From NCBI GenBank assembly GCA_038496445.1, contig JALMLS010000081.1:142214-206213 (forward strand): a stretch of DNA of 64,000 nt. The letters are read 5' to 3'. This DNA comes from Trichosphaerium sp. ATCC 40318. Taxonomy: Eukaryota > Protista > Tubulinea. This document shows positions 33,402 to 64,000 of the stretch, piece by piece (the stretch's first letter is position 1; each line of letters begins with the position of its first letter). The notes below the pieces were generated by a model that saw only the letters and a program-made list of their open reading frames with translations, made no database searches and had not been told where the DNA came from. The position numbers and the translations under genes were made by a program.

Positions 33402-33467
33402 AGAATAATTCTATTTCATGGCGCAAGGCTTCGAAAGAGTTTTCCAAGCGCCTATCATATTTATTCT
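33402..33467 (-). promoter_or_regulatory. SECIS element (form II) of selenoprotein copy 1
   Basis: Minus strand reads AGAAUAA-AU-AUGAU-AGGCGCUUGG-AAAA-CUCUUUCGAAG-CCUUGCGCCA-UGAA-AUAGAA-UUAUUCU: 7-bp helix I, UGAN/NGAN core, GC-rich helix II, apical As and mini-stem; starts 48 nt after the stop. Confidence 0.93.
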
Positions 33468-33514
33468 ACGCAAACAAGAGTATTCACTCGTTGTTTTGAT
33501 TGTCCAGAAGCCAT

Positions 33515-36069: not shown

Positions 36070-37092
36070 ATGGAAAAGAAAAAACAAAAACAAACCCAGT
36101 TCAACCAAGTATTCGACCTTGTTTCGCTACCAATTGAGTTAATAGTCCATATTCTCAAACAAGGGACATATACACTTCGTACAGCCCAAACGTGCATTCT
36201 TTTACGAGATATAGTTCACAACCATGTTGGGTATGGTCATATCCATATTAAAAACACAAATGAAGTTCAGATGCTTTCTGGTAGCCCATTACTCCACAAT
36301 ACGACTATTGATTTTTTTCGAGAAAAGCCAACAAACGACATTATTGCAGCATTGGCAGGTGTACACACTATCTCCTTGTATGATTGTCAATCAATAACAG
36401 ACAATGGCATTGTGGCATTGGCAGGTGTACACACTATCTCCTTGTATGGTTGTCAATCAATAACAGACAATGGCATTGCGGCATTGGCAGGTGTACACAC
36501 TATCTCCTTGTATGGTTGTCAATCAATAACAGACAATGGCATTGTGGCATTGGCAGGTGTACATGAGATTGATTTAGCACATACAAAAGTAACAGATGAA
36601 GGCATTGCGGCATTGGCAGGTGTACACACTATCTCCTTGTATGGTTGTCAATCAATAACAGACAATGGCATTGCGGCATTGGCAGGTGTATATGAGATTG
36701 ATTTATCACATACAAATGTAACAGATGAAGGCTTGAAGGCATTGGCAGGTGTACATAAGATTGATTTAGCAGGTACAAATGTAACAGATTCAGGTATTGC
36801 AGCATTGGCAGGTGTACATGTGATTAATTTAGCACATACAAATGTAACAGATGAAGGCTTGAAGGCATTGGCAGGTGTACACACTATCTACTTGTATGGT
36901 TGTCAATCAATAACAGACAATGGCATTGCGGCATTGGCAGGTGTACATAAGATTAATTAATCACATACAAATGTAACAGATGAAGGTTTGAAGGCATTGG
37001 CAGGTGTACACACTATCTCCTTGCATGGTTGTAAATCAATAACAGACAATGGCATTGCAGCATTGGCAGGTGTACATGATATTGAGTTTTAA
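36070..37092 (+). CDS. Intronless F-box plus LRR tandem-repeat protein with premature TAA at 36958-36960 (possible pseudogene)
   Basis: LVSLPIELIVHIL F-box; 21-22 aa repeats ALAGVHTISLYGCQSITDNGIA and ALAGVHxIDLxHTNVTDEGLK; repeats continue in frame past the stop to TAA at 37090-37092. Confidence 0.85.
36345..37085 (+). repeat. 63/66-bp coding tandem repeat array (about 11-12 units)
   Basis: Recurrent GCATTGGCAGGTGTACA anchor every 63 or 66 bp. Confidence 0.95.
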
Positions 37093-41601: not shown

Positions 41602-43628
41602 CTCTTTGAAAATCACAGGTTTAATGAAAAAGTCAAGTAGTACTGTAAAGTGAACGCAAGTCGTAAACTGTTCTTTGAAGCAAACACAAAAAATGCAAGC
41701 AAGAAACCCTACAGCGTTGTGTTCATTCTATTGCCAAACTGTGCTAGTATAGGCTATAGGTGTTAGACTTTGAGGCTTTGAAGTCCGCGTAGAATTAGTA
41801 GAAAATTGAAGATTTTTCATGTTCTTTTTATGTTGTAATGAAAAACGTCACACTTGGAGCTTCCTTTTTCGTTTATCGCAAGCTCGTGATTTATTACTAA
41901 TGTGTTTATTGTCTGTCACCGTTTTTAAAGAAAACACAAAAAACTAAAACAAGCTACAACGTTTCATGGCTCACGTGATTTTCAGCGCATAAATTAGTTC
42001 TATGAATTCATATTAACGACTTATCGTTAACAAATACTATCTACATAGCACAAACAGCTAGGAAAAGACATCAAAGAGAAAACATAACCAATTTGAAAAG
42101 TATTCAGAGAAACTTGGTCATAGTAAACATTTGAACTGTATTTTGCGACTTCGAAAACAACATTGCACATGAGCAATAAAGGCTCGGTCTCCTGCCATGA
42201 TTTTCACAAAAGAGCCACGAAACAAAACCATTGAACCTTCAAATTTGTACATATGTATCTCCAGTTGTACTCTCGTTTTGTTGGTGACCAGTTGAACGCA
42301 ACACAAGAAAATAATAAGAGTGTACAAGTGCAAGCTATGTTGGTCTGCATCACGTTCGAACACTTTGTAAAAACTGTGCTATCAATTTGCTAGCCCCGTC
42401 CGGCGACTGAGGACTCAATTTGTTGATGGTGTAGGGAGAAAAAGCACTTCCATCACACTTCCTTTACATTTCCAGATTTTACCCACTCCCTTAGAATCCA
42501 GTTACACCTCTTGCGGCGAAAATGTCTAATATAGTAAACGACTTGTTTTTTATTTTGTGAGAAAAAATATCCATTGTAAATTTTATGAAACCTTCCATCA
42601 TTGATTGCTAACTTATCTTTTGCTGGTTGACCATTAAAGAAAATCTATCTACTGCTCCAACTTGATAATCATTTACGACTGTCATCGACATTACCGCTCC
42701 AAGCAGAAGTTGTAGTATCTGTATAAATGTATCGGTATTTAATCTGACCGTCTGTACCGTCATGTGCCAGTTCCAGTTTGAGTCATAATAAACGTGTCCA
42801 CTGTGTCTGCATTGGTGGTAATGCTTTTGCAAGTGTATCAGTGTTCGCAATTACACCTTGCATAAGAGCACAGTCTTTCATCATAAAGAACCTCAAATAG
42901 AGTCATACGAGCTTGAATAGAAATGCCAGCGATGAAATCAAAAGTAGGGGTTGTTGCATAGTTATGTAATGTTGGTAGCTTAGTTTCTTTTTGGTTTTTT
43001 TTCAAAGTTGTTTTTAAAGGTCAAAACAACGTGATTTCAAATAACATTTTGTGGCTTTTTTGCTATTTTGTTTGTCACCTTTTTGACAAATTGGTATTGT
43101 TAGCAAGACAACGGTGTAGGAAATATGAGTAAATTAACGTGAGAAGACAACATTAGTTCAAAAAAAACACAAAGTGCAAACATTCAGTGATTGGTTTGCA
43201 AGTGTCGTTAAAAGCAGGTATGTGTTCAAAACCGCTTTTAGAAAATGTTGTTAAAAATCATTACCCTGCATTGAGTGGTTCTATGCTCTGTAGCACGGTT
43301 TTCTGACAAGAAAAACCATCCAATTTTTGTGATATTTTTTTAAATTTCAACAGGTTGCGTCTCACATAGTTAGCTTGTTGTTAATCAAAATATATCACTA
43401 TCGCAAATTGACTATTTCAAATTACTCATACACCTAGAAGAGGTTTTTCTCTGTAGCTACAATACGAACTCTTGCAATGAAGGGACGGTGCTGCTAAAAT
43501 CCCAAACTAGTTCCAATAGAACTCAGAGCAAGTACTACACAAACTATTCTGGCTTGCTTGTACTCAACATCAGATTTCGTGTTAGTTAGTTCAGCAAGCG
43601 TCAAAGAAAATTTAATCTAATATTATAT

Positions 43629-45441
43629 TTACAAGTCTTGTTGTTTTATTTCTGTATCTTTCTTTTTTTTCCTCGTTTCTATATTCACCTTTTCAAGAGG
43701 TACTGTATCACTCTTAGGTTTTCTCCTTATAGCTGTTATTTGTGTTATATCAGCCGCAATTATGCATATCCAAAGACACGACCATACAAAGAACCATCCC
43801 GCCGGGTATCGAAAAAATGGAGCTGCTCCCATAAGAGATATAATCATAGCGAGAATAGAAAAAACAGCGCTGAACATTAATTGAGAAGTGATCTAAAACA
43901 AAAACAATAGTTTAGTTAGATGACTTTCAAAGGAAAATTTTTTCTGACCTGTTTAATTTTGAGGACCTCTGGAGTCTTATGTGTAACTTTATATAGCGCA
44001 ATCAGTACTCTTGTACCATTAAACAATAAATAGGATACTACACATGTAGTGGCAATAAGGTAGAGAGCAAGAGCTGCTTGATAGACGTAATTTGCGTATC
44101 CGAAAGCCAAAACGAAAGCAATACTAAAATCGACTAGAATGATTATAAATATGACTGATACGCATGGTATCAAGAATTTGTGAACATTATGTCTTGTGTG
44201 TTGCCTAAGTTCTTTTACATTATGAAGCATCTCGTGCCTACACATGGGTTAACATTGTAAAAACAAAAACCCTATTTTCTTATTTTTTTCTTACCAGTAA
44301 AACGCAATGATTACTGACGTTGCTAGTGATAGTGATGGTAATACTGTTATAGCGAAGTCGTGCAAAGCTTTTGGGAATATTCTCCGCGAATAAATTGGAT
44401 CGATTATAATATACAGTGCCCGTACTATATTCAAAGTCAACAAACTTAAACAAAAAAATACGCCATGGGCCAAAGTGCGTACATGTGTTTGCAAAAATTT
44501 CTATGATGAGGCATGTGTGAGAAAGAGAGAATTTAAGCCCATTTCTTTTAGTAATTATACGAAGCTTGTGACATGCAATAAAAACAGCAGCAACTGCCAA
44601 GGTACCAGCTATAACCGAAAAGTAATACTGCAAACGAATAAGAAAAATACAGCGTAAAACAGCGAAAAAACGTAAAACAGCGAAAAAACGTACAAACCCA
44701 AACTCGTTTATGCCTGACCATGGGTTGCTGTCTATTTATTCTTAACGGATTGGTATCACAAATTCTATTAGAACGTACCAGTACGATGCAAGGTGACCAT
44801 GAACGAAGGGTATGTGCCATTCTTGGGTGTATTCAAAACTTTCAAAATTTGAGCCAAGTCATCTCCTGCTTCCACTGTTGGTATCGCTGTAAGCTCAGGA
44901 GCTTGATTTTTATTGATTCTAAGGTAAGACAAACCCCCTGCCACCTCTTTACGAAAAAAAACCCGTTAAAATCTGACAGTTGTGCACTAAAAACCTAGCA
45001 CACGTGCTTGAAAATGTTTCAGATATTACAAGAGCTAAAGCTCCTTTATCAATTGCTTCAGCGACGAGATAACCCCAGTCATATGTGCCTGTTGTGATGT
45101 ACACTATATTTCCTGAAACGTTAGGACTGACTAAGGAAACAATGGTCCCTAAAGAACAGTTACATTGCATGAAAAGTGAGCGGATAAATAAACTCGCCGT
45201 CGTGAAAACAATATTACCTTGAATTGATGGCGTCCTCCACGCGTCCTTTGATATCCATCCGACGTCTGGTGTATTAAATGAACCTGCTCTATGCGTTGGC
45301 AATCAAAAGGGGGTAAAACAAATAGCTACAGGAAGTATATATAAACTTACGAGTATACGAGGAGTTTGTATTTAGTTCTAGTGCGCACACAGGACCGCTC
45401 ATGGTAAAAAATAATGCCAAAAGAAATCGTTTCATCAACAT
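43629..45441 (-). CDS. Signal peptide plus PA-like ectodomain plus multi-pass (about 7TM) membrane protein
   Basis: MKRFLLALFF signal; AIDKGALALVISE (PA-like); DSNPW junction; several TM exons (IIDPIYSRRIFP...SVIIAFYW). Confidence 0.65.
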
Positions 45442-45841
45442 CGAAATAGGGAAATGTGCTGCTCACGTGAGTAATCACGTGCCGCTTTATGAGGTTTTTA
45501 ATATAGGCCCTCTTCGACGCGCTATTAGCCGCTTGATGTGATTTCTTCGACGACGAGAGTGATCAAATAGAAGCGAAATATCGTCAGGTATTGTTACGAT
45601 CGGAATTTGTTCAGTATTTGAAATTCTTAGGTTGTGTTTTTTTATCGCGACGTACTCCCTTTTTTTTTTTATTTTGATTCTTACTAAAACTAGATTATAT
45701 TATCACGTGACGACTCATCATCCAAGCATAGCTTGGTATAAATAAACGTGAAACCAAATTAGAAATTATTTAAAAGGTTTTTTTTTGCGTCATCTGTTGG
45801 CAATAAAAGTAATGTCACGTGACAACATAAGGGGTCATAAA

Positions 45842-48800
45842 TTACGAAATTACAATTTGTTTATTTTTGTTTGTATTAGGCTCATGGTCAGTTAAATTCA
45901 CGTGTGGTGGCGATATAACAAGAGACTGTTGTTTCGATCGAGCCATGATAAACTAATTGAAAAAAAGCTTTAGTCTTTGTTCTTTTGGCAAGAAAAAAAC
46001 GCACATTTTGGAACACTGACACGTAGTTATCCTGTACCACACTTGGCGCTGAATTTCCGTTTTTAACTTTGACGTTAATAGTGCCTCCCACTAATAACAT
46101 GTTAAATGAAGATAACATTTTGATGTCCTTACCTAGATCAGCCGAGCAATTACAAGACTGTAAACCAGCACAAGGTTCGCTCCACTGACTGTTAGATTTG
46201 CACTTGGCTATAAAAAGTAAGTTCGCTTATCACTGCTGTTCCTTTATCGTCACATACCATGTACGCCAGGAGAATAAACCGATGATATATTGTACTGTTG
46301 ATAGAATCCTACGTAATCAACTAGACCTCAGTTAAATATCACAAAATAAAACTCTGCAGGTACTAACCGATTGCAAAAGCATATTGCTCGTTATAAACAA
46401 ATGAACCGTCTCCTTTATAATCAATAGTAACACTGATAAAAGCCATATCACCAGAAGGTTTAGCTGGTGGCTTCAAATGCATTGTCACCTATACAATTAA
46501 TGTCAATTCACATGTTTGGCTGTTGTAATAAGGCTTACGTATAAGTTCCACAAAACCCACGTGTCATTAAAACCATCCAATAGTGTACCCCATAATGGTT
46601 CTGATTCCCTAAGAAAACGAAGAGTCAACCTTAATTTGGGAGTTGTGAGGTAAAGTACCATTGAAGGTATTTTGTTTGAGAAAAATTGGCAGAATTTTTG
46701 TTAGGCATGGAAAGGATTACAGGATCACGTGCTGTAAACGGTGGTACTAAAGCCTACAACCGACAATTTAGTTAAGTTCACAAAAAGTCAACAAATACCG
46801 CACCATACCACCTATACGATCACCATATGTAGCATTCCCATCAGGATAACTAAACATGTGTAAGCCAACAATTTTTTTAATACATCTTGTTCGGTTCTTG
46901 AACGGCGTACATGACGTTTGGTATAACAATAGGAGGAAGAGGTTTTCTTGGTGTACACTGTCCGTCTTTACTAGCACGAAAGGCTGCAAAGGCTAGGAAT
47001 GCAGCTTCTGAAGAACCCATTTGATCAGCTCTAAAGTTGTATCCTTTTTCACAAAAAGCGGGTTCAGTCTACAACACAAACAAACGAAACGAGAAATTGT
47101 TGGAATGTACCTGTCCAGTTTACATTCTTTTGTAGGCAGTCAAAAGATGATTCTTTATCGTTCAATGCCATTGCAGCAAAAGCATACGATGCCCAGTTCT
47201 TGAAATCAGGAAAAACTTTAAGACCACACATTTCGATGACAGGTCCGCGCCATGCACTTACGTTGAAGTATGGTGCGTTAGCTTTATTATTTGGTATGTC
47301 TTGCATCTTTTTAATAGCTTTCAAGCTCGTAGACACCCTAAAAGAATAATCAGAAAGCGTTGCTTGTATACCGGTATAATATCTACGAACCAATCTCCAG
47401 AAATGAGCTTAAACAAAATTATTAGTTTTTCTACCTTTGACATTATGTACGTACCACGTGCTCTGTAATAGGCGTCACGGGTGTTACCTATATACATTAA
47501 ATACCATATAAGTCGTTAAGGCAAAAATAAGTCGCACTTGAATGCCAAAGAGAGTTGTCACTGAGTCTTGAAGATAGTTAGCATTTTTCCACTTTTTTTT
47601 TCAATATTCTCTTAAGAGACTGCACCTGCGAAATACGTTGTAAATGTCATTCCTACTTCTTTGGCGACCCCAAATATTGTCATATTAGAATACAAAGAAG
47701 GGAAAATATTCTTCTCTGGTGTAGTACGGATATAGTACTGAATCTGGAAAATAATAAGAAAATCACAACAAAAAAAACAAAAAAAGTCAAAGTTCCTCGT
47801 GCCCCAGTCAATTCATGAGTCAACAACTAAAAGACATCAGCGTTAGATACAAATACTCATGTATGGTATGCTTACCATCCTGCCAATATTATACAACCTT
47901 GTACCAAGTTTCTTGTCTGGAATGACTTTGCCAAGCAAAGCAAGACTGTACCAAGCGTTTGCTGCTTCAGAATTACCACCGCCGTTATCTTTACCTTCCT
48001 GTCTAAACACGGTTAATATTTATATCTACTATGGTATGAAGCTGTACTGGTTTTGGAGGCCCCTTGCAAAACTGTAGGAGTACCAAAAATCCATATGCCT
48101 AAAATCAGGAAAGTATTTATCTGAAGGCGATGGATTCGCTATATCCCGAACTAAGTCCATAATCTAAATATAAATGGGTTATTTAATGTCTAAAAGAATG
48201 GGTGGTTGTACCTTAGCAAGGTTATCTTTACACCAATTTGGATCATAGCTGGACCAAGTCAGCGAAGTACAAAAAAAACGAAACAAAATCGCCGCACCGG
48301 CACACTACTGCATAGGCGTATATGATATAGCCGTAAGCAAAACTATAGTAAAAGGTTAAATTGGATGCAAGGTTATTAATATAATTGGTATTCGTACTGG
48401 TGGTCTCCCATGTAACCTATCACAAAAGTAAGTTGGTTTTAAACGATACAAAAAAAAAGATATTACCATTTCCGAAAAGAAGACGTGAAGAGTTTTGCGT
48501 TGCCTTTAGGTGTGTGAGTATTGCTTAATATATTTTCAATCATTTAAGCTTATACTTACCAACTCTATGACTCCTCCAAATAGTGTATCATAGAATCTAA
48601 GCCAACCTTAGTCGAGACATGTTTTTTTTTTTCAAAACCATACTACTTTTGAAAAAAGCTCGTACAAGTTAAACTCTGTGCATATCTACTAGTATGTTAA
48701 GAACAATAAATACTGATTACCAAGTACTTGATTAGTTCCTGATAGTATATTATCCATGTGCGTTTCAAGCTGTGAAAGCGGCTAAAAACCGAGTTAAGTC

Positions 48801-51618
48801 AACACCGTGTTATTGTTGAAATTGTGTGCCTTAAACGGGAATTGAGTGCCATTATGGAAGCTTGCAGGAGGGCTGACATCATTCACCCAATACTAAAGGT
48901 ACTGTAAGAGAGCTTCAAAAACATAAATGCTTACTTCAGTTTCACCAAGACGCTCTGCGATAAGTAGACTTCTTGCTACTTTAGCTACCTCAAAAAACAA
49001 AATTTAGTACGTTCAAAAAACTAGTATTCCATCTAACAACCACCCAATAAAAAAGTAATTTGAGAGCACGTGACTGATGGGAATTACTCCAACATTGCAC
49101 CACAGGCGTACCTTCCTTCCATAATCGTACCTAAAAACACAAGGTTATCTCAGTGAGAAGAGTCTCAAAACAAACTTACACTTCACTCCCATAAATCCCT
49201 AAAGTTCTAGTTTAATCACGTGCGATAAACACATCTTCAAAGTACCTCCGAATAAACCAGGGATTAGCTTTTCATCTGAAACTTTGATAGCTTCGAAATC
49301 AGAATATAATGCTGTTCTAATACCCTCAACCATTGTATCGTTATCTGCTTCGCAAGGCATAAAAAAATCAACATCAACAAGATCTTGTTTCAAAGTCCAC
49401 GTGTTTGCCAGTACACATGTGAGATCGCCACGTATGGTCTTACTAAAAATAGATTAAAAAAACAAACAAAAGATTAACTTACTATGAAAGTGGTGTTGAT
49501 GTGTACGGCTTCTGAAGTGAATCCATATGATGTGGCATAGCACACATCAATGGAATACCGTTCGAATTTGTCGTAGTCCATGAAATGGATGTTACAAGTG
49601 ACTTATCATCATTTATTTGAGTGTTCAAATCTGCTCCAACGACAGTTATCTGATTGTCAACAAGCGTCTGTACGTTAGCATTAGAGAATAAGCATGCCAT
49701 TGTAATCTACCTGTATTCTACTGTCATACTCTTCTTGTGATATTATTCCATGGCTAACGAGGGCTCCTCTAAAGGAGTAAATTAAAATCAAGAACATCTC
49801 TAGTTTTTTGGTACTTTATTGTCCCAGTGAATAGTTTGTCGCTGAAAAAATGAGTCGCATTTTTTCTTACCCATGTCATTGGATGAGACGATGTTACTAC
49901 CCACGTCTATATTATTCTTCGTTAGCTTTGACTTAACGACTAGAAAAAAAAAAATCGTACTTGGTTAACATGAGTGTACTTCAACTTATCATCATCATTG
50001 TATGTTGAAGAAAACCATCTGCTTTCTGCAGTTGTTGGATACCGTTCATAAAACGAAAACGTCCAGCAATTCTCTGTTGCTAGAAATGCTTGAGAATGAA
50101 CTGAGGTATCCTTTAGGATCAGCATCGTACTTGTATTACATTCTGATAGTGAGATGTTGTATTTTGATCCGATTAGAGCTGTAAGTTTTGTGTATTGGTT
50201 CGTCACTTTTTTTTATGAGTTATCACGTGTTTAGGTAAATTCAAACTTACCAAAAGGCATCCCTCTTACTATTGATGACGTCATTGTTCCGTTTGATGAT
50301 GTTTCCCATAACCACGTTACATCAAGAGGTCCTATTCTTAGTTATACTAGCCATGATTTTGGTTTTCTCTTATTGTTTGTTTCTTTTTTGGGCTACGCTA
50401 GTACGCTATCGCGACATCGTTTTAAAGAGTTCGTACCTGATTGTTTGAGAACACTACGCTTTGGAAAATCTGTAAATAACGGCATGAAACCGATAACAAG
50501 TCTACCCTCTGTACACAAAAAAAAGTGAACAATTTAGTCATCTCTAAAATCAAAAAGTAAAAAACGTTGTCATTGTTAGTACCTCCCATGAAGGGTTGAG
50601 ACTGTCGTTTAAGTGTAGGAAAACTTGGATAATGAAAGCCAAACTAAAATAAACAAAACTTTAGGGAAATAGAAAACCTGGGAGTGAAAAACTCTTACGG
50701 GGTTATAATCCCAATAACCTGGACTACAAAAACAAGTTAACGAAGAAACAACATTATTGACGCATGAAATACGCATTCATGTATAAACTTAGCGTACTTT
50801 AGAACTGTGAGGATATCTTTATCTGCACTACAAAAAGGATTGTCACAAGTGGCACCCCATGCTTCATTTGAGTGTCAATCAGAAAGCTTAACAACAACTA
50901 AAATTTTTTACCTCCACAAGATTCATTTTGGTACTTGTTCCTATACATCATTTTAGCGTCTAAATACACTCAAATCACTATACGTACTCACAAGAGTACT
51001 GATTCTGTCTCAGTACTTCAAACTCTTCTTCATAGTAGACCCATATGCTTTTTTTAGTAAGCAATGACATTTTCTTAAGAACTTCGTTTTTTATCAAAAA
51101 AAGTTTTTCTCTTGACGCACTAAGAGTCTGCCAGAACGAGTATATAAGGTGTTGGATATATCATAAATGTTCTATATGTTGATAAAGGTATAGTCTCAAA
51201 ATAAGGAGGCATCGTTGAGGTAGAAGGCGCAAGAGGCAAAACCTTATTCGGTTTAAATAAATCTCATCAATAGTGGCTTATAGTTCGTACCGCGTTGACC
51301 CACCAACGGCTTGAAGGGTATGGTTTACCTTGAGAAATTTAGTGACATTTGTGTTATGACCTTTCACTAACCTATTTTACCCCAAACTGGTAAAGGCTTC
51401 AATAACTGGCGTAGGCAAGGCATAAGAAAGTCAAAAGAGAAATTCGGACGGAAATTTCTTCTGTCTTTCTTTCTTAAGATCATCAAAATGTACCTTGTTA
51501 TCTCTCGCCTCGATGCCGACACTAGGTTTGCATGGTACGCCCTCGTACTCTGAACCGCATAAAGGCCTTGTTTTATCAAGTTTCCACGTGATAGCGCTAA
51601 AAGCGCCACTAAAAACAT
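45842..51618 (-). CDS. Glycoside hydrolase family 81 (endo-beta-1,3-glucanase-like), highly fragmented into short exons, with C-terminal extension
   Basis: KPYPSSRWWVN, IVRGMPF, LMCAMPHH, YDTLFGGVI, DHHFAYGYIIYAYAV, LVRDIANP, RHMDFWYSYSFARG, SEAANAWY. Confidence 0.85.
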
Positions 51619-51914
51619 GTGAGAGTCACGTGATGACGGTTTTCGTGCCTGAAAAGACAAAAAACCGTTGTCACTCTTAGCAACAGTGTTATATCTATCA
51701 TTTTATAATATCAATGCATGCGAACGTTGTTATGCTTGTTAAGCGCTACTGGCTGAAAAAGGTGAAGAATGAAAATTCAAAACATTTCTACTCTGGTGCC
51801 TCTTCGTAAATAACGGCGCTTCAATTTGTCATACTGATTTTCACACAAGGTTTATACGCGATGTAGGGCTACAGACAGTTATTTTGGAGTCTCATTTTTT
51901 AGTGTCTTTTTTAC

Positions 51915-52414
51915 TTAGTTTACACCATTTTCTGGAAGTAACGATTCTCGTTCTTCTGACTGCATGTCTTCTGGCTTCTGCGCACACACGCAGCAACACA
52001 TTACACACCATATTATAACGGAAATCTCAATGACACCAGCAACGGCGCCTCCAATGATAGCGACGAGCGTCCAATCCGATAAAGGCTCTTTAGGAATCAT
52101 TAAAAAAAAAACAACCAAGAAATTTACAACAATCAACCAAAAAAAAGAGAAACCCTTTCACGCACGTGCATCGGCCTGCGTAGGCGAAAATGTTGGATAC
52201 AGTGTCGGTGAACCTACTGTCGGTGTAGTTGTAGAGTTAGATGTTGGAGCTGTACTATTCGACACAGGCGGTGGCGGTGCTAAGTATTTTAATGAGTATG
52301 ATCGACTTCTTAGTGTTTTAAAGGCGTACTGTTTCCTGTGCGATGCGCAACTGTTTGGATAGCTGCACATAACAATATTAATACTAACAGTGTTGGTTTA
52401 AGCGTAGTATACAT
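51915..52414 (-). CDS. Small single-pass membrane protein with S/T/P-rich ectodomain
   Basis: Signal peptide, PT-rich exon, TM LVAIIGGAVAGVIEISVIIW, Cys cluster, ERESLL dileucine-like tail. Confidence 0.65.
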
Positions 52415-52502
52415 GAAACTGTGCTGCGTCTAAACAAGTCAAACAGTAGTTTTTTTTTTTTTCTTCAAAAACAAAGCGCAAGAAGATGGTTGTTATACAA
52501 TT

Positions 52503-53333
52503 TTATTTACATTTAGATAGAGATATATGGTAATGACAGTGAACGTCAACATGTCCGTGCATATCCATTCTTTTAAACTCTCCTTGTATCCTACCACATA
52601 TCCAGTAACAAGTTATGTTTGATTGTCCATTAGAATGCCATGTTTCGTACTTATACTCTCTCTTTCCTTTTATATAATAGCAATCCTTCTCTAATTGTCC
52701 GTTGTGATACCATTCAAGGCACTTTCCGTCTAACAAGTCTTTTTTATAGAAACACTTTGTCTTTATCTTTCCGTTCTTGTGCCACTCTTCAAACAATCCA
52801 TCTCGTTTTCCTTTCTTATAAAAACAAGTCGCTTTCTTCATACCATTCGCTCTAAACTGCTTCGCTTCACCTTCCTTCAGTCCTTTCTTAAAAACGCAGT
52901 CGAGCTTCAATCTACCATCTGGACGCCAGTGCCTCGCCCTTCCTTCCTTGACACCTTTTCGAAAATAGCAGAGAAGTTTTAGTTGTCCGTTTTTGTGCCA
53001 CTCCTTGTACTTTCCTTCTCGCCTCAGCGTGTCAGTATCAATAAACCAAAGGCTTTTTATTTGGCCTCTTCGATAGTAAGTTCTATGTTCGCCGTCGCAT
53101 CTGTTCCAGATAGCATGAACGCTACCGCACTTGTAGAAGGTCTTCCAAGTACCTGCTGGTCTGAGCGACGTATCGTATCGCGTCATCATAGCAGCTTTCT
53201 TTGAAATTAGAGGCCATAGTTTATAGAGCTCTGTGTCGGTACTAGCGATACGTTGTTGAAGTTCTGGAGGCAAGGATACAAGCGCTAGTGGGAACGCTTT
53301 TGCCTTGTCTGTTGTGTGATATGTGCCATTCAA
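52503..53333 (-). CDS. Intronless F-box-like plus MORN-variant (YwqK-type) repeat protein; no in-frame ATG ahead of the F-box
   Basis: LVSLPPELQQRI; 24-aa repeats such as EGKYKEWHKNGQLKLLCYFRKG; TATA-like TATAAATA at about 53375-53382 on the minus strand. Confidence 0.8.
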   Translation of the reverse strand: MNGTYHTTDKAKAFPLALVSLPPELQQRIASTDTELYKLWPLISKKAAMMTRYDTSLRPAGTWKTFYKCGSVHAIWNRCDGEHRTYYRRGQIKSLWFIDTDTLRREGKYKEWHKNGQLKLLCYFRKGVKEGRARHWRPDGRLKLDCVFKKGLKEGEAKQFRANGMKKATCFYKKGKRDGLFEEWHKNGKIKTKCFYKKDLLDGKCLEWYHNGQLEKDCYYIKGKREYKYETWHSNGQSNITCYWICGRIQGEFKRMDMHGHVDVHCHYHISLSKCK

Positions 53334-54531
53334 TAAATCGCGTTTAGGTTCGTCTGGCCTTCTATGAGTATCTCTATTTATAGCCTTGTTAGATAACGAA
53401 CAACCACATCACGTGACAGATGAAAAAAAACCGAAACGATGCGAAAACTTTTTTTTTTTTTTTTTGATTTGGTTTTTTTTCACTTGGGTTTTTTGTTTTT
53501 GTCGTCTTGTATAGGTTTGTATACGTACTGTATTACGATGTATTTAACTGGATTGTTAAAACTTTGTGAGACTGTTTTATAATTCTGCTTGGAGACCTTT
53601 TTCTTTTGTCTGTAATGTAACATTTGATTTTTTTTAGAGTCTTTTGGATTTTTTTGGGTCTGCTGGGGTTAGAGTACAGTGTCTACTTTTTCTTCTTGTG
53701 TATCACGATCTATTTCCACCCTTGGTATAGTAAATTTCCAGAGATGCGTGTGTTGTCAGATGATGATATTATGTGACTAAGTTGTGGCAGGTGAAGAAAT
53801 GTTATTTAGTTTTTTTACCGTTTTTAGAAGCCATGACTTAAACAATAAATACAATAGATTCGTCTATGGTTAGATACAATGTATTAGATTACATTAAAGC
53901 ACAGCGGAGTAATTTTAAACCCTCCGTAAGAAAATATCACGTGACTGGTCGTATAAGTGTCCCAAACGCTCTTTTTGGGCTGTGATTGTTTACTACGTAA
54001 TTATTTAAACTCCGCCGCTCACTTTTTGGAGACAATACCGACATTGTCCTTTTTTCGGCTTACTAGCGTGTGTAACGCTTTTTATACAAAGTAGAGCCCA
54101 ATGCTGCTTTCGAAAAGTTTTCTCTTTTTTCCCTTTTCGAAAATAAAGCACTGTGTGTCGACATCGCTAGCTGTGTACTTTTATCTTGGCGGTTTTTATA
54201 CTAACCTTTCTATAGCTTCACGTGACTGGTTTTTTTTACATGAACGCGCATTGTAAAATCGCGTTTAGTGTACGATATCTCTTGTGTCATTTACTTGCGC
54301 AGACAATTGTCTACCAGAGCTTCGTTATATAACGTACGTAGCGACTATGCTAGCGAAGCCAAACAGAAATAATTTCGACCTTCAGTCTTCTAGCATCTCC
54401 ATACACGAGCACAAGATGAAATGTAAAATATTGTATTACTGGTTGTAACAAAGAACAGTTGAAATTTAAACACGTGCTACGAAATAACACTACAATATTA
54501 TACTTCCACGTAGGTATTGTAAATCGAAGGC

Positions 54532-54777
54532 ATGAATTTATTGCAGCTTCCTACAGAGATAATAGCGCACATCTTGCGTCAAAACAACCAAATCGCGATG
54601 AAAAGCTTGTCAAACTTGTCATTTCCTTGCTTCAAACGTTCATGTTATTGGATAGCACGCCATTACACTTACAAAGTACTCAAGCGAAATCAGTTTGGAT
54701 TCTTACATAAAAAAATCACGCTGAGTACATGTGTTTCTGACGATAACATTGTCAAACAGCAAATTCTTCAAAATTAG
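54532..54777 (+). pseudogene. Truncated or degenerate F-box gene
   Basis: MNLLQLPTEIIAHIL F-box start; ORF ends after 81 aa with no clear continuation. Confidence 0.45.
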
Positions 54778-55436
54778 GCTTCAGAGTCCAGAAAATAGCA
54801 GAAAAGTCTTGTTTTTTTTAGTTGTCCGTGTAGCAAGAATCGAACAAATCTGATCGTCTCCCTCTGTAGTCCATATTTACCGTTCTTTATGGCGTATGAG
54901 AATGTTGCTGGAGGTCGTACTACAGACCTTACTAGTAACTTAAGGCGTCAAAACACATGCTGAGGTTCATACCATTAAGCTTCGCAGCACTGCATGATGA
55001 AGTGCAACTAAACCATTTACTACTTTTCCATGTTGGCTGTATAATATCTAACCACTGCCAGCAGAGATGTGCTGCTACCACGTTGTTCAGAACTTGTTGG
55101 TTTTTGTATAAAACCTGTGCTACATACAGGAACCTTTTTAAATACAGTTTCTGTGGTCACATGTGCTACAGCTTGCAATAATACGGCTCCCATGTAACAA
55201 TATTTACAACCATGTGAAAGACAGAATCAAAGCATCATTGTTGTCGAAGTGTCTGTAAAACAAAGAAAAAAAAAAAGAGGAGAAAACTACCATCCGATGT
55301 GGAAGTGTTTTTCTCCATTTTTCTGCTACTTACAGGTGGAATTCCTGGAGAGGCTGTAAAACAATGTACTTTGTACGTCATATTGTCGCAGGAGTATCAA
55401 AACGTTTATTTAGTGAGTGTGGTGTCGTGTGGTACG

Positions 55437-55502
55437 AGAATAATTCTATTTCATGGCGCAAGGCTTCGAAAGAGTTTTCCAAGCGCCTATCATATTTATT
55501 CT
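55437..55502 (-). promoter_or_regulatory. SECIS element (form II) of selenoprotein copy 2
   Basis: Identical by eye to 33402-33467, with the same helix I, GA quartet, helix II and apical As. Confidence 0.93.
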
Positions 55503-55550
55503 AACGCAAACAAGAGTATTCACTCGTTGTTTTGATTGTCCAGAAGCCAT

Positions 55551-56034
55551 CTATTGAAAATTCGCTTTAATAGCGTTGATGACCTACCATTTGTTAGTTT
55601 TATGCTTAAGAACCATGATGGCGTGCCGGCGCGTGGTTTTTCATGTGATGGCCCGTAGATAACTTAGAATAGTAAAGATTTCCCTTGTGGTCCATCACCT
55701 CGAATGCTCCTTCTCTAAAGACATAATTAAAAAGGACAATAAAGCAAATTAGAATTAATTACCTTGGTTTTCCACCTAAAATCGTTGGATGGTTACCTGC
55801 AATAGCAAGCTTTGGCATAGCGGCTTGAAGCGCATGTGCGAAAGCTTTGGAGGAAAAAATGTCAGAAAGTCGTTTTCATCCACTAAACGCTGGTAACATA
55901 CCTTGAAATTGCCGGTTGTAACCTCACCCGGTACTAAAACACGATTGTAAGTATAAACGACTTCATCGAGCTCTAAGTGTGGCTTACCAGTATTCTATGT
56001 GTACCCATTCGTATGCTGCTTCTTTTGCTGCCAT
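55551..56034 (-). CDS. SELENOW: Selenoprotein W-like (Rdx family), copy 2, 93 aa, Sec encoded by TGA at 55924-55926
   Basis: Exons 56034-55988, 55933-55902, 55844-55763, 55714-55627, 55583-55551 give MAAKEAAYEWVHIEYCTGUGYNRQFQAFAHALQAAMPKLAIAGNHPTILGGKPREGAFEVMDHKGNLYYSKLSTGHHMKNHAPVINAIKANFQ. Confidence 0.92.
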
Positions 56035-56351
56035 TCTCTGTTTCTTTCAATAATGTACTTGGATACTACCGTTGACTTTGTTGATTTCCTTTTTTTTTTT
56101 TTGAAAGAGTTCCAATGTACACTTTGCAATTCACGTAAACACCCTTATTATTAGGTCGGTGTGATAACGCCAAGACCCATGAGAATCAAAATTACGTGAG
56201 GCAAGTGTGTCGTGTAAACCACTATGCCAAACTTGCCAACTGCTAGAGTGAGGTGGAACATTACATTGTACAAAAAGGGTTTATTTTTGAGATACAAAAG
56301 AAGAAGTTGGCTACACTTGCTACCAGATTGGTCGTTGTTAACATGGCTGGA

Positions 56352-59338
56352 TCACACAAATTGATTTGTCTTCATGATCATAGATACGACATTTCCTGTC
56401 TTTGAGAAACCTAGTTGAAAAGTTAAAATGGCTCTAATAACAGTGGTGTCAACGCACAATTTTAGACTCCGCATAACTGATTTACTGTATGCTCCATGTA
56501 TACAAACAGTTTCTAGCGATGGCGACATACCAACAAACTTCTCAAAAGCATCTGAACTAACTTGTGAACCTAGTATAGGTTCAAATCTTTCCATTGTTGG
56601 AACTACAGCAATGTTAACAAAATCTTTTTACTTAGAAAAAAGCAACGCACATTTAAGACCATCTAGGGATTTCCACGACATCTCTACGATAAGAGTGCTA
56701 AAACTACAACAAACCGAATTAGTAAATAGGTCCAGTTAATTTGCTTACTCCTTTGATGGATGTGCATTCTTGAACGGAGCACAGACGGTGTCTTTCAGGT
56801 GCAGTTGTTGTAGTGATTTCATTGAAAGTATTACATTCCTAACAGCTTTGCCATCTGTATAGTGCGATAACTTCAAGTTTGATATCAAACTACACTTTTC
56901 TACAATAATGCTCAATAATAGAAACAAATTATCAAGTTGAATTAAAAAACTGTATGCCTACCTGCAATTGTTTTCAAATGAATTGAGGAAACAATATATG
57001 ACGATACATCAAGTTCGCACAAGTGTTGGAATGAAACATCACAACTGAGGAATATTCTGTTTGGAATTGAAGTTTTCGGAATTATGAGCTAAATGGTAGG
57101 TTAGTGTAAATAGCAAAAGAAAGCTCATTAGGGAAACCATACCCGTAATTTCTTTAGTAATGTAAATTTCTGTTCTATGAGGCGCCTGCATTCCTCTACC
57201 TCATCCTTGTTTTGAAACGCAGCAAGAATAATATCCACCTCTTTTAAATCACACGGAATCCTACAACAGTTAACTTTCACTTATGTCATATTTATATAAG
57301 CTAGCTCACATTTCCAGAAGGGGTAATAGAGTACTAGTTCCCAGCTTGATAGTCAAGCGTTTAAGTTGCAAACAAAAAGGCTCTGTAAATAAAAACCCTG
57401 TGTTAGTAACAATCCAACAACACAACATGACTTACTTGGGCTTTTATCCGTATTTACTAACTCTAAAGGTACAAAAGTCAGTATAGTATATTGAGTGGGA
57501 ATTAAAAGTACCCTTTGCATCTATCTTTAAGTACGAAATATTTGGTACTTTTCTTAACAGCTTAAGGTCAAATGTATTTTCAGGGACCATAGGATTGACA
57601 TGGTCATAAACAAATAATTGGCTGAGCATCGGCATTGGATCAATCGCAGAAAGGTCTGAATTTGATATAGACAGTTTTTTGCAAGTCTTGACGTTGATCA
57701 AGTCCATCAAGGGCAATTTAATATTCAAGGCACAGTTTGACCACAGACTCTATAGTAACAATGATGATAAGCAATGGTTGATAACAATTGCGAGGTGTAC
57801 TTCAAATGTCAGTTGAATTGCACCAAATTCGTGATTCATTGCATAGCAAGAAGAATCAAAGAACAATTCTTTGAGGTTCGGAAACCATGAATGCAAAACT
57901 TTATGAGCGTTAGCCCAATTGAAGCCACTAACATCAAGTGCCACCAATGAAGGCAGACACAGTGGATCAAAGTCTTTTTTTGATAGCTTTTTGGAACGTT
58001 TGGGCATCCTAGGATAAAGATAAGCAGCTTTACGATGTTGATTAGATGGTACTAACCCAAGTTTAACAAGAGAAGTTTGCCTAGATATTTGTACGAATAA
58101 AGAACGAACTGTATCTACTTCCCAGTCTCTGGCATCAATACCAGACAAGTTCAAATGTGTAAGTTTTTCACATTTACTTATTGCCGAAATGATATATTCA
58201 GGCTTTAACCAGCCGCAACCACTAAGTCTAAAGTAGAATGAGTATCTTCGAATAAGAAAAAGTCTGGAACCAGTTTGAGGTTTATCATGATGTTTGTTGT
58301 AGTACCTTAGCGTTTGAACCATATCGGAGCATTCTGTAATCTTACTCAATAAAACTAAGTCTGTTATCCAACAGCTATAATAAGACAAACTATTAGTGCT
58401 TGAAAAACTATGAAAGATCTTCAAATGATTTGAGACTTGCGTAATTTTCAGAACAAATCCCGGTTGCTCAATAGAGCTACGAAAGGCCTATTACGCTCTA
58501 AATAGCGTCAAACCACATTCCGGCACTGTCATTTTGATTGGTAGCCAGTTTTTTTCTCGTTTTGAAATAAAATCACGTGCGCGCGTAATCTGGTGTTTGT
58601 TTTAGCGATTTACATCACGCAGCTTTTTTGGAGTAAAACAAAAGTAATAATCGAAAAAAAGTGGCTACCAATCAAAATGACAGTCTCAGAATGTGGTTTG
58701 ACGCTGTTTAGAGCGTACTAGGCCATTCGTAGCTCTATTGAGCAACCGGGTTTTGTATTGGCAATTACGGCTTTCAAATACAAACCAATACATACTTATC
58801 TAATTCAATGGTTCTGCCAAATGCAAATTGTGCTGCTTGTTTCCAATGGAGACACACTTGACTTAAATGGCGTCTTTGGAATTTTGTCAAATGCTCAAAA
58901 ATCATAACCACAATCTCCGTTGGCATATCTCCAAAGTTGCATAGCTTTACCGCGTCTTCGTCACATACCTTTACAAGGGAATTAAAACAAGTAAAAACAT
59001 TTTTAAGGTGACAGGAAACCTTCATACCGCTTGGTATAAATCCCGCTCTAATTTTCTTAAACCCTGCTGCATCGTTCCAAAGATCGAGTTAAAGTTGCTT
59101 ATCTCCGACTAAAGGCGACGATTATTTGTGTCGGGTGTGTATAAACCAATAGCATACCGATTCATTAATCAAGTCCTTGTTTGTTTCCAAAAGACTCTGT
59201 AATTGCCTTACAAACGCTAGTCGATCACTGTCGCGTATATTGTTGCGTGTTGTATTTGACTTGGTACGTTTTCTGGGAGAGATAGTCTAAAACCGTTTTA
59301 GATGAATAGATGATATTAACAAGTACTTTTAGTGACAT
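56352..59338 (-). CDS. F-box plus degenerate LRR protein, spliced
   Basis: FGDMPTEIVVMIFEHL...LSQVCLHWK F-box; LRR-like CEKLTHLNLSG, LPSLVALDVSG, FPNLKELFF; both ends approximate. Confidence 0.7.
58440..58769. mobile_element. MITE/foldback-like element with about 100-120 bp terminal inverted repeats
   Basis: 58459-58556 (CCCGGTTGCTCAATAGAGCTACGAA...GGTAGCCAGTTTTTTTC) is the reverse complement of 58653-58750 with few mismatches; degenerate extension out to CGTAATT/AATTACG; no ORF. Confidence 0.8.
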
Positions 59339-60497
59339 GTGGCTGTAACAGTTATGATGATGAATTTCTCTTTTTTTAGTGAAAAGAAGACTGAAAACGA
59401 ACCGATTTTTTGGTAAGACGCTAGTCCATATGCTAGACATACCGTGATATTTCTCTTTTTTGTTTGTGGCTTGCTAACGCCAAGCAAAATTAAACATTGT
59501 TGAGAATTACAGACAATTTTTGTGTTTTGCATTTAACCCTTTCTCAGTTTGAAGTACGGCCTTGAAACTAAGATTTCTATATTGCACATAAGATTGTAGT
59601 ACTTGGAACATAAAAACGAAGGCCTACAAAAGCACCACAAGTGTATTTCAGCGTTATCACGAAAACATTGTTTTACATGTACTACCCTACGCGTAGGTAG
59701 TTGTTTTTCGTTATTTATATGAAGGTTTGCGCGTATTTTATAAAAAACAGCTGACTGTCAAGACAAATTAACTAACGACCGCCTAGACTTAAATACAGAT
59801 TAAAAAATGGACCATCCATTCAGCTACGTTTGATTTGTTTTGGTTACAAACCAGCGTAGTAATTGTATATCTGTGGAATTACACTTTTGAGTTACGCTCA
59901 CGCTGGTTGCCTTCTTGTCGCCAGGGCCCTATCCGGGGGTCGCTTTTGCCTTTATTCATGTACAGTTTTTCTCTTTCCCTAAAGGCTTTCTCACCTTCAA
60001 GTTACTGTACAGCTGCTACATGGTTAAAACCGCGTGTATGGTATGAAACTTAAAACGCTTAAAAAAACGTGTTTAATAGCTGTCACAAGCAATATCTCTT
60101 GCTAGCTTTGGGTTGCCGTTGATAATGTCTTGAATGCATTCCATTAAATTCTTCATCGTCCATAGCCGTTTGCGTGTCCAGGTTCCACTTTGGACTGCCA
60201 TTCATTTTAAACACGTGATAACCTTGAACGCCTAAAAACGAGTCCCATATCGCGATAACGCGTATATGTGAGTCAACACCACCCGACATCACCAAATGGT
60301 TACTGGTTGCAGCCAGCTCAAGAGACTTTATTGTGATTGAATGAACACGTGACATAAAAGAGATAAGAAATAGATTATGAGCGGTTAATAAATTGTTTAT
60401 TTTGCACGCTCGCGTTTTAGGTTTGTTGGCTTACTAAATTACAGATTATACAGCATACTCGCGAACAAGACTACACAAGTATTGATGTGTGTTTGGA

Positions 60498-61585
60498 TTA
60501 TTGATATTTTTTCATCTCTTCCAGGTAGTACGCAAGAGTGCATCTACAACAAATCATCAAAAAAAAAAAAAGAGTCGAATAAAAATAACAAAACGAAATT
60601 GCAAAATATTCATTTAAGCTAAAACACGTAGTCGTTACGCTCTGCGTAGTGCGTTTAATAAAAAATAAAGAATCAACTACGCGTATAAAACACGTAGATA
60701 AGTGTCTTTGTCTTTTGACACGTACGCGATTTTATCGAACTCTGGGTATGCGATAACAGTGTTTAGGAACTTGACGTCACTTATATATAGACAGATGCTC
60801 TCTATGCGCTTATCTGTCTTTGGACTTATCAAACCAGTTAATATCTTACGTATACCAATACTGAACTCTCCAATAAGCTCTGAAACCCTCTCAACTCTTT
60901 TTCCTTTTAATGTATTCGTCTTGTACCCATTACGCACAGAAGCACATATACGTCTAAAACCCGATACAAGGGAGTTAAACGAGTCGTCTGTCAACTTTTT
61001 ATCTTCATAAAGCATTAAAACCTACACAGCATGGTGAATACGATAGACAAGATATTATAGATTAATGAGAGGTATATAAGTTTCTTCAGAAATGAATTCT
61101 GCTTTAGTAAAAGGCATTTTCTGATAACTGACTGTAAAAAGTGAAAAAAAAAAAGTTCGGGGTATTTGTACCTTTACAGCAATTTTAATAATGTCTTTTT
61201 TCAATGTTTTGGCGAACTTAGGGTTGTTCTCACGTCCTACCATAATTTTGACAGTGTTCAGCAAGTCTAACGTTTCTTTGTCGACAAATTTATAAATGAG
61301 CTGTTTTCCAAGAGAGGATGAAGCAGCAGCTGATGCCATGCCCTTTTTTTTGCGATACATCCAGCTCCCTTTACCCTTTTTTTCTGGCTCTTCGTCTGAT
61401 ATATCGAAGTCTGCGTCGTCTATGTCATCTAACGTGTCTCTCTGTGCGTATTTTACAAAAACTGTGCTGATCTCTGTACAACGTACCTCTTCTTTACCAT
61501 TAGACTTTTTACCCTTCTTAGAGCCTTTTCGCGAGCGTTTTGGTGTTTTTTTTACTGGTACCTCCTCTGCGCTGTCTTTTTCCAT
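60498..61585 (-). CDS. TNFAIP8/TIPE-family (DUF758) protein
   Basis: KKGMASAAASSSLGKQLIYKFVDKETLDLL...AKTLKKDIIKIAVK|VLMLYEDK...LISPKTDKRI resembles the TNFAIP8 fold sequence. Confidence 0.75.
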
Positions 61586-61959
61586 TTGTAATGTCTGTAT
61601 TTATGTAATGGAGACGTTTGATGCCTGTTTTTAAAAAAGGAAGTGCTTTTCAACGACATTCTTGTTATGTACTATACAGCTCCAAAATCTGCATAATAAC
61701 GTTATATTACGTTATATTTAAAGTTGATTTTAACATTTAATGTACTAGCGCACCAGTTAATGCGATGATTCACAACTAACGCAGACTATACGTTCGCTAG
61801 TATAAATAGATACGTTGTATGGTGTCATGATGTCCATGACGGGGTTTTAAATCGTGTCGTCATTTCTTGCCATCTTATTTCCGCTTTACGAGTATTTAAG
61901 TATACATTATGGACAGCAAGAGTATGTATGTATTTATTTATGGCGTTTAGAGATCGTTT

Positions 61960-63296
61960 CTAGGTGGTCTTTTTCTTCTTCTTTTTGGACCAGTAACTGC
62001 GAATCGAGAAGTCCACAAACAGCCAAAACAATGTCTGTATGTATACAAAGTATACTACAGTAACTCGCCATGGGAACGCACATTCTATACAGACTGTTAA
62101 AAGTGTGTCACAATCAAAACAAGCGGAGAATCAAAGATTTTTTTGTTTTTTCGATAAGAAGCCGTTCATTTTTACTCAAAGTAGTTCAAGGCGCGTAGGC
62201 TTTGCGTATAGACCTCGGTAACGTAGAATTGTATTGTTTCACTTTGTGAAGGTGAGGACGTACTGAAGTATAATAACCAGAAGGCTTGTGCGTTCATTAG
62301 GATGAATTGAAGCAATTGCATATATGTCAAGTACTATTGAAGAAAAAAAAATCAGTCAGTACGTCATTACAAAACCAAAAAAAAAAAAAAAAAAAAGTCA
62401 ACAAAATAAAGTCTCACTTGTTTCCACCAGACACGGTATCCCAATGTAGATAAAAAGTAGTAATAATACATTGCAAGATGTACAAGGGAATTTAGAACAA
62501 CCTAAATGACACAGGTAAGTCAAGACAAACCGAGAAATTGGAAAAAACTTGTCACAAACAAAAAAGAAAAATAAATAATTTGAAGATTTTGAAAACCAAA
62601 AAAAAAAAAAAACTTGTCACAAAGTTTCTCTTCTGTACCGTACCGTTAGGTAAATATCGCCATCAAAACCGACATTAACGTTAACCCAGTATACAAAGAA
62701 GATTGTGAGATGGTGATAAACATGTAAAAATGTAAGTTGTTGCCACTTTTGACCCAATACAATGAGTATAGTGTCTAGAAAGTCAAAAACCTATAAAACG
62801 TCTTGTCAGAAGTTAAGAAAAAATGAATAGTCATCAAAAATGAATCTATTTGGCATAGAATAGCCTTTCTTACGTCTTTAGTGCATTTCCTAAGCGTAGA
62901 AACGATAAAAAACGTTCGTTTACGTACCTTGGAAAGATAAAAAACCCATAAAACAGTTGCGATGCGTGTAGAGCCTTGTTCGAATGTATTGCACACAACA
63001 TTAAAGTTATTGATAACAGCTTGTCTGATTGCTTCTCCACACATGTATGCGCATAGAAATACTTGCAATAGATTATAAACAAGCTTGGTAACCTTAAACC
63101 ACCCTTGGTTCCCAGCTGGTGAAAGACCAAGTGTTTTTACGATCGTAGGGCCAATCAACACAAATACAGCGTACGCTACGCAAGATATAACCATAAACGA
63201 AGCGGAAGTGCCAGTCCATCCTTTTGTTACAGGATTTGATATGTCTGGTGCTAAGAAGGTAAGGACTTGCTGTCCGTATTCCTCAAGCGTTTCCAT
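61960..63296 (-). CDS. ELO/GNS1-SUR4 fatty-acid elongase
   Basis: YNLLQVFLC, FYLSK|xLDFLDT, QLTFLHVYHH, NSLVHLAMYYYY, YLTYMQLLQF, C-terminal KKKKTT ER-retention-like tail. Confidence 0.95.
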
Positions 63297-64000
63297 GGCG
63301 CGATTTGTACGAGAAAATGACGAAAAAAATGAAAAAAATTACTAATTCGTTCCCAAGTCGCAAAGTTTAACAATTTACATTAAAAACCGTTTAGATGTAT
63401 TTCAACTAGCGACAAATGGCGCTAAACGCTTTTTGTTTCACAAAACAAGCACACTCGAGTGATTTTTTATAAATCTTAAGTTTAATTGCTGTTTTATTAC
63501 TCTCTTGTTGTTTTTTGATATGTTTTAAGGGTGTTTTAGCGGTTTATATGTATTTCTATGGTATTCCTTTTTTTCCCAGATACATTTCTCTCTATTTTGG
63601 CTGTGGCTTCTCTTAACGCTTCATTTTCGCTGGTGAATTAGTTTATGACTACGTTTAGTTGTATTTTATTGGTTTTAAGGTATAACACGTGCCTAGAGAA
63701 ACCAAGCGGCACGTGAGTCCAGTTTCCTTTTTTGCTTAAAACGCTCAAACAAAGATTGCTTTTTTTTGGATGGTGTGGATACCTTTTACGTTTAAACGGA
63801 TTCTCCATTTCTTTAGTAGTCATCTGTGATGCTCTACTGCGCTGTAGGCCACAAACAATCTTATTTTAGTTTTTATGAAGTTGGTTTTTTTGGGGTTGTC
63901 TCGTGGCTTCCTGGACCGATTTTTTTCGCTTTTAGTGAGCGTTTCGTTGGGCGCGATAGTTGCTTTGGTTTTTTTGTGTGAGTTGTGAGTGAAGATTTGG

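Follow-up and report, generated by a model that had tools for sequence, protein, structure and literature searches.

The question raised by this locus of Trichosphaerium sp. ATCC 40318 is whether an in-frame TGA in a short minus-strand gene is read as selenocysteine (Sec) in a second, diverged selenoprotein copy, and what the presence of the same codon and of a SECIS element in both copies says about the selection acting on them. The window, the whole stretch of 64,000 nucleotides analysed here, corresponds to positions 142214-206213 of contig C110 in an assembly of 70.3 Mb and 642 contigs. Its DNA is of eukaryotic character, with a G+C content of ~38% and introns of 48-60 nt. The initial annotation had placed a diverged paralogue with a Sec codon some 22 kb from the first copy, and this is borne out by an intact gene of the CxxU selenoprotein type, copy 2, which comprises four coding exons on the minus strand (56034-55606) and codes for a product of 89 residues. 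Its paralogue, copy 1, lies at a distance of 22,027 nt, likewise on the minus strand (34007-33571), and codes for 88 residues.

Coding exon 1 of copy 2 (55988-56034, minus strand, 47 nt) is delimited by its sequence and splice sites, starting with the ATG at 56034 and ending with the TG of a split Cys codon; the N-terminal ..HIEY piece that it encodes resembles the MKFHIEYC and MGKIHIEYC of relatives. Exon 2 (55902-55933, minus, 32 nt) equals exon 2 of copy 1 in size and phase and carries the Sec codon, an in-frame TGA at 55924-55926 (minus) within the motif C-T-G-U. Exon 3 (55763-55844, minus, 82 nt) aligns with the part of the relatives that follows Sec, upstream of the conserved PRxGAFEV, while the coding part of the last exon (55606-55714, minus, 109 nt), closed by the TAA at 55606-55608, encodes ..GAFEVMDHKGNLYYSKLSTGHH.. 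and a His-rich tail. Together the four pieces (47/32/82/109 nt) amount to 270 nt, or 89 codons and the stop. Copy 1 is assembled on the minus strand from exons of 44 nt (33964-34007, ATG at 34007), 32 nt (33879-33910, with the Sec TGA at 33901-33903 in C-T-M-U), 82 nt (33740-33821) and a last coding part of 109 nt (33571-33679, TGA stop at 33571-33573), giving 267 nt in total (44/32/82/109 nt).

All introns of the two copies run from GT to AG and match in position and phase. Intron 1 divides the Cys codon of the redox motif (TG/T), while the codon divided by intron 3 (AG/A, AG/G) rebuilds the family-conserved Arg of P-R-x-G-A-F-E-V, and Sec and the conserved Pro lie 18 residues apart in the window gene as well as in the cDNA L016. 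Since the split codons restore the Cys and the Arg and the Sec-Pro spacing matches that of a cDNA, the three splice junctions are backed by homology. The two loci can be aligned over ~750 nt, and this alignment, along with the colinearity of the exon pieces with independent relatives, excludes a chance origin. Upstream of about -30 from the ATG no similarity between the copies was found in a locus-versus-locus comparison. Within the 3'UTR, 37 nt bounded by GT and AG (55551-55587) were considered as an intron and not adopted, being below the real intron lengths of 48-60 nt. In the sequencing runs, none of which is recorded as RNA, 0.27-0.36 of the sampled words were present, a fraction that fits exon-only RNA contigs or low-coverage DNA.

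Several details of the initial annotation hold at this level, namely the motif EYCTG[TGA]GY with its TGA at 55924-55926, the amino acid contrast between CTM-TGA-GYKKQYL in copy 1 and CTG-TGA-GYNRQFQ in copy 2, and the freedom from frameshifts, the ORFs being intact in both copies. Of the exon sizes it gave (32/82/88/33 nt), the first two are right and the last two are wrong, as the last coding exon measures 109 nt in both copies; no usable GT donor was found 88 nt into the last exon of either copy.

Homology searches were made with separate exon pieces (26-35 aa) and with exon profiles. Single exon pieces, which are too short, gave no match in Pfam, PDB or six-frame Rdx scans, a word search based on the last exon's open frame of 50 aa returned zero candidates, and a search of the ESM Atlas with exon 4 provided a weak lead only, to a cluster with Rdx in 17% of its members (score 0.83). 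When 1.84 billion representative proteins were searched with a profile built from two last-exon sequences, four matches at E<=0.001 were obtained, two of them short ORFs, namely P0001 with an E of 8e-6 and P0003 with an E of 9e-4. P0003 and its relative P0005 lie above the Pfam Rdx cutoff (35.8 bits for P0003, against 22.6) and score 46 and 34.9 bits, respectively, with TIGR02174 (SelT/SelW/SelH; cutoff 34.2 bits), and the solved structure closest to P0003 is MIEN1/C17orf37 (2LJK, E 1.3e-5). The start of ORFs of the P0001/P0003 type follows directly on an in-frame TGA, treated as a stop in gene calling, and the exon-3 and exon-4 pieces of the window gene are colinear with the proteins of these relatives. 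By this indirect evidence, copy 2 is placed, via its relatives, as a probable member of the Rdx (SelW/SelH/SelT/MIEN1) family.

The frames of the relatives continue upstream through this TGA. L015 and L031 contain the full frames M-K-F-H-I-E-Y-C-T-A-TGA-G-Y.. and M-K-Y-H-I-E-Y-C-T-A-TGA-G-Y.., respectively; L016, a cDNA with a long poly(A) run at its end, reads M-G-K-I-H-I-E-Y-C-T-S-TGA-G-Y..; L018 reads ..I-E-Y-C-T-S-TGA-G-Y.., and L017, of which an intron-bearing genomic form exists (L019/L022/L024), reads ..V-E-Y-C-T-S-TGA-G-Y... The Sec site is therefore occupied by an in-frame TGA, homologous to that of copy 2, in five out of five distinct relatives (L015, L016, L017, L018 and L031; motif IEYCT[A/S]-U-GY), and no Cys form at this site was found among the few relatives examined. 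The earlier proposal that TGA has been kept at the second redox position thus stands, the codon being ancestral and located at the same site in every relative fetched. Type-2 SECIS elements are present downstream in L016, L017 and L018. The public gene calls of L015, L016, L017, L018 and L031 all start past the Sec codon and give products of 55-63 aa, the first residue of which is V in four of the five and M in P0009 (L031).

As in the Rdx family (PF10262, TIGR02174; MIEN1 2LJK), the window genes code for products of ~85-90 aa with a CxxU straight after a hydrophobic first strand, in which ..HIEYC..U is followed by U-G-Y and then by the G-x-F-E-V and S-K-L strands, and they have a UGA-encoded Sec with a SECIS in the 3'UTR. 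The first strand and the motif that follows it read VHIEY-C-T-G-U-GY in copy 2 and IHVEY-C-T-M-U-GY in copy 1. The window dipeptides T-G and T-M set the pair apart from the family; the dipeptide of mammalian SelW is G-A and that of SelH is T-S. The initial annotation had proposed that the two dipeptides could tune redox potential or substrate; the second x of the CxxU simply varies in the family between A, S, G and M. While the Rdx relatives keep a C-terminal amphipathic helix (..EEVVKKMKK or ..GEVVQLMKAKGFK), both window copies instead carry a His-rich tail (..TGHHMKNHAPARHHGS).

This tail is encoded on the minus strand at 55609-55660 and 33574-33625, reads ..TGHHMKNHAPARHHGS and ..TGHHISNHAQARYHGS, respectively, and is conserved between the copies. 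It could bind metal, and it suggests that the last helix of the thioredoxin-like beta-alpha-beta-beta-beta-alpha fold of the Rdx family may be altered.

The environmental homologues on JGI and ENA contigs (L015/L031, L016/L018 and L017/L019) equal the window genes in length and share the IEYCT-x-U-GY motif with TGA, the PR-x-GAFE[VI]-x-D..G..Y-x-SKL core and a downstream SECIS, but their introns are missing or located elsewhere, each contig shows a single gene and the C-terminal helix is present. Across the 70-Mb genome, the family profile finds this pair and a third copy on contig C384, and no further paralogues or Cys homologues. The last exons of the two copies are 77% identical to each other and about 47-55% identical to those of the relatives. 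The earlier description of a lineage-specific pair agrees with both observations.

The genome encodes a tRNA-Sec(UCA) (Rfam RF01852, 61.7 bits against a gathering score of 47; G000:C5:742868-742954, L007:1501-1587, minus), which was found by Infernal and was not called by ARAGORN, as well as a SepSecS gene of five colinear exons on C99 and selD-like exons on C102, each of the latter scoring under the whole-protein cutoff. UGA is not generally reassigned, since the ORF of copy 1 ends in a TGA stop. Selenocysteine is the most likely reading of the UGA at 55924-55926.

A SECIS-type hairpin is located in the 3'UTR of copy 2 (55437-55502, minus), as identified by folding and by a descriptor scan. 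It consists of a helix I of 7 bp, an AUGA core at 55490-55493, an unpaired AAAA and a GA at 55451-55452, and lies 112 nt past the stop and 325 nt of mRNA past the UGA. The initial annotation had named a retained SECIS, and the AUGA..AAAA..GA hairpin ends precisely at the left coordinate of its feature, 55437. In copy 1 the descriptor scan finds a hairpin of 66 nt (33402-33467, minus) that is letter for letter the same. The published criteria for SECIS elements (PMC2375036) place 10-13 nt between core and AA and 15-39 nt between AA and GA, allow at most two consecutive unpaired positions, and set fold-energy thresholds of -12.6 kcal/mol overall and -3.7 kcal/mol for the upper stem. With 11 nt from AUGA to the unpaired AAAA, a further 22 nt to GA, and energies of -13.6 kcal/mol overall and -12.1 kcal/mol for the upper stem, the window hairpin falls within these spacing and energy limits, and its upper stem is similar to those of four control SECIS elements (-11.5 to -16.2). 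Helix II is weak: of its 10-12 scored positions seven form standard pairs, and U-U and A-A mismatches occur. The loose descriptor yields ~4 chance hits per 128 kb, equivalent to a chance of ~0.6% for a given 200-nt UTR.

The Rfam SECIS_1 model gave no match on either locus, at the gathering threshold or at E<=10. This silence means little, as the model is insensitive here and found a single site in the whole genome (C7:495604-495665). A covariance model built from the SECIS elements of three relatives is uninformative, as it detected neither the window hairpin nor the control SECIS elements of L014 and L015. A further descriptor match in the window (39753-39802, plus strand), with 10 helix-II pairs, is attributed to chance, a G/T-rich repetitive stretch (GGTGG/GTTGTTGG units) pairing with itself. 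The window hairpin resembles the SECIS elements of Dictyostelium discoideum (PMC2375036) in its AUGAU core followed by a U-U mismatch, with more U-U mismatches in the stem, and in the unpaired A-run (AAA/AAAA) 10-12 nt past the core. It differs from them in having AAUA rather than the Dictyostelium-specific UGUA before the core, and UGAA rather than UGAU on the 3' side.

Identical residues are found at 54 of 86 positions between the two products. Nei-Gojobori counts made per exon, from which the Sec codon, an indel codon and the three codons divided by introns were excluded, give a dS of 0.62, a dN of 0.26 and a dN/dS of 0.41 (bootstrap 0.20-0.79; 0.45% of resamples reach 1 or more). Exons 3-4 have ratios of 0.2-0.35, the lowest being that of the last exon (0.20). 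Exon 1 shows eight non-synonymous and no synonymous differences and contains the only coding indel between the copies, of one codon. Both copies keep EYCT.UGY, GN and R.G.FEV.D..G.LYYSKL.TG, the ORF and all six splice sites. A dN/dS near 1, which the initial annotation had named as evidence against its view, was not found, the interval around 0.41 excluding 1. These comparisons support net purifying selection on the coding sequence, for which the pairwise value is compatible with one relaxed branch.

The third copy, on contig C384 (27.4 kb), belongs to an alternative haplotype, as C384 matches the window on both flanks (42007-54701 and 60088-64000) at 96-97% identity and in one orientation. 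In the region G000:C384:11067-14723, the gene-bearing segment of 1.5 kb (window positions 54700-56201) is inverted relative to these flanks, window positions 56202-60087 are absent from C384, and the joints are occupied by unrelated DNA of 765 and 1405 nt. Each joint insert carries GGATTTGCCCTGAAA, a 15-mer with only four copies in the 70-Mb genome. The inversion may be either a structural polymorphism or a mis-assembly. Compared with copy 2, the C384 gene has a single synonymous change and an S-to-F replacement at the last residue. Among the neighbouring features, diverged tandem repeats are common to window positions 36481-37088 and the far end of C384 (G000:C384:599-5103; 65-76% identity, with many offset matches ~129 nt apart), and a 276-aa ORF at 52503-53333 (minus) contains repeated ..G.KEG....W..NG.LK...C.Y.KG.. 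units that look like those of the MORN type.

The coding sequences stand in contrast to the 3'UTRs, in which a block of 202 nt in copy 2 (55395-55596, minus), including the SECIS and the AATAAA at 55405-55410, recurs as a block of 200 nt in copy 1 (33361-33560, minus) with no substitution and two 1-nt indels. The blocks span from 10 nt past the stop to ~10 nt past the AATAAA, and elsewhere the exons of the two copies are 65-82% and their introns 59-81% identical. The block is also identical on C384. At the synonymous divergence observed, such identity cannot be neutral. In the orthologue pair L016/L018, the coding sequences are ~80% identical and the 3'UTRs through the SECIS only ~78%, and helix II of L016, L017 and L018 covaries, with both sides changed in four of 11 pairs; the constraint usual in the family thus does not freeze the 3'UTR. 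Past the poly(A) signal (55300-55394 and 33263-33360), similarity between the loci is patchy and includes 34 consecutive identical nucleotides at 55347-55380. This patchy region contains splice-acceptor-like signals on the minus (..ttgttttacag/CC) and plus strand (..ctacttacag/GTGGAA.., ending in TAA). A plus-strand terminal exon or antisense ORF under 55300-55380 was rejected, as the frames are not kept between the copies.

Several explanations can be set against each other here. That the TGA is an ordinary stop and the similarity downstream of it untranslated, such that there is no selenoprotein gene, would fit with the failure of Rfam to recognise the hairpin, but is highly improbable. Conservation at the protein level extends for ~70 codons past the TGA, at the low dN/dS of exons 3-4, the sequence in question matches relatives of the Rdx family, and without read-through the ORF would be just 17 codons long. 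Furthermore, every relative has TGA at this family-defining CxxU position and the genome possesses the Sec machinery. Somewhat more credible, though still unlikely, is that only one copy works and the other, be it copy 2 or copy 1, is untranscribed or decaying while appearing intact. One copy may lack a promoter, given that the similarity does not extend upstream of about -30 from the ATG, the pairwise dN/dS fits one constrained and one relaxed branch, and the differences in exon 1 are all non-synonymous. A neutral copy of 270 nt would, however, be expected to bear stops or frameshifts at a dS of 0.62, and instead both copies have preserved the ORF and the TGA as well as the six splice sites and the residues conserved in the family, with a one-codon change as the sole indel; copy 2 of the second haplotype, moreover, shows only the two changes described above.

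The identity of the 3'UTRs admits two principal readings, of which recent gene conversion appears the likelier, though well short of certain. Under the alternative, extreme purifying selection would act on the whole 200-nt UTR as a long, sequence-specific regulatory module that surrounds the SECIS and is common to the two genes; this is a less probable source of the identity but carries more weight than either explanation above. The identical tract roughly coincides with the mature 3'UTR and recurs on the second haplotype, and the two 1-nt indels argue that it is not one sequence assembled twice. Against this degree of constraint stand the divergence of L016 and L018, which are only ~78% identical in this region at a similar coding divergence, and the covarying helix II. 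The lack of any substitution over 202 nt at a dS of 0.62 exceeds the constraint known for SECIS elements, and the patches of identity past the poly(A) signal (55347-55380) are as would be expected of a tract at the DNA level. A more speculative variant, a little less probable again, is that the two old paralogues and both haplotypes owe the identity of the 202-nt UTR, which comprises the SECIS, the ~90 nt on its 5' side and the poly(A) signal, to function or to repeated, possibly 3'-end-anchored (cDNA-templated) conversion; in a side reading, the conserved His-rich tail would make this a metal-binding SelW-like protein. As the 3'UTRs are identical between the copies, the retention of the SECIS amounts to one observation rather than two, and more probably reflects recent conversion than long retention. 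In the earlier argument for purifying selection, the net constraint on the coding sequence and the ancestral TGA therefore hold, while the retained SECIS must be withdrawn as independent support.

The explanation which we favour with reasonable confidence is that copy 2 is an intact Sec gene of the Rdx family and the paralogue of copy 1 by an old duplication, that both copies have been kept, and that their 3'UTRs were converted recently. The four-exon gene would give rise to an 89-residue thioredoxin-like redox protein with a C-T-G-U motif, and the SECIS hairpin, located 325 nt further along the mRNA, would assist the reading of the UGA at 55924-55926 as Sec. The paralogues of 88 and 89 residues would have been produced by an old duplication of local character (dS ~0.6) and maintained since then under net purifying selection, and a recent, short gene-conversion tract may have made the SECIS, its flanks and the poly(A) signal identical again. 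The gene structure, the homology, the conserved TGA of the family, the Sec machinery and a dN/dS below 1 are direct results, and from here we infer that Sec is inserted, that the proteins have a redox function, that both genes are expressed and that conversion made the UTRs identical.

Large selenoproteomes are known in aquatic protists (PMC2375036), and two adjacent SELENOW genes have been described in Chlamydomonas reinhardtii (PMC7539508). The latter resemble the present pair in that Sec genes of the same family occur close together through local duplication and divergence. The Chlamydomonas genes are adjacent, whereas the window copies lie 22 kb apart and combine strongly diverged coding sequences with letter-identical 3'UTRs, a pattern that the excerpt of PMC7539508 used here does not report for the Chlamydomonas pair. 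The duplication itself is real but fairly ordinary; what is new is the 3'UTR, which appears homogenised, the lineage-specific His-rich tail in place of the last helix, and the inverted segment of the alternative haplotype.

The two genes add an unannotated, lineage-specific pair to the selenoproteins of the Rdx/SelW type and illustrate why such genes escape annotation: an intron interrupts the Cys codon, gene callers halt at the UGA, and the public relatives are all truncated at the Sec codon. They also show that an identical SECIS in two paralogues is no evidence for long-term selection, since the 3'UTR has here probably been homogenised. Should the identity prove functional, the UTR could, for example, be a module placing both mRNAs under one control by selenium supply or decay, and the pair would offer a compact natural system for asking which parts of the 3'UTR beyond the SECIS core matter.
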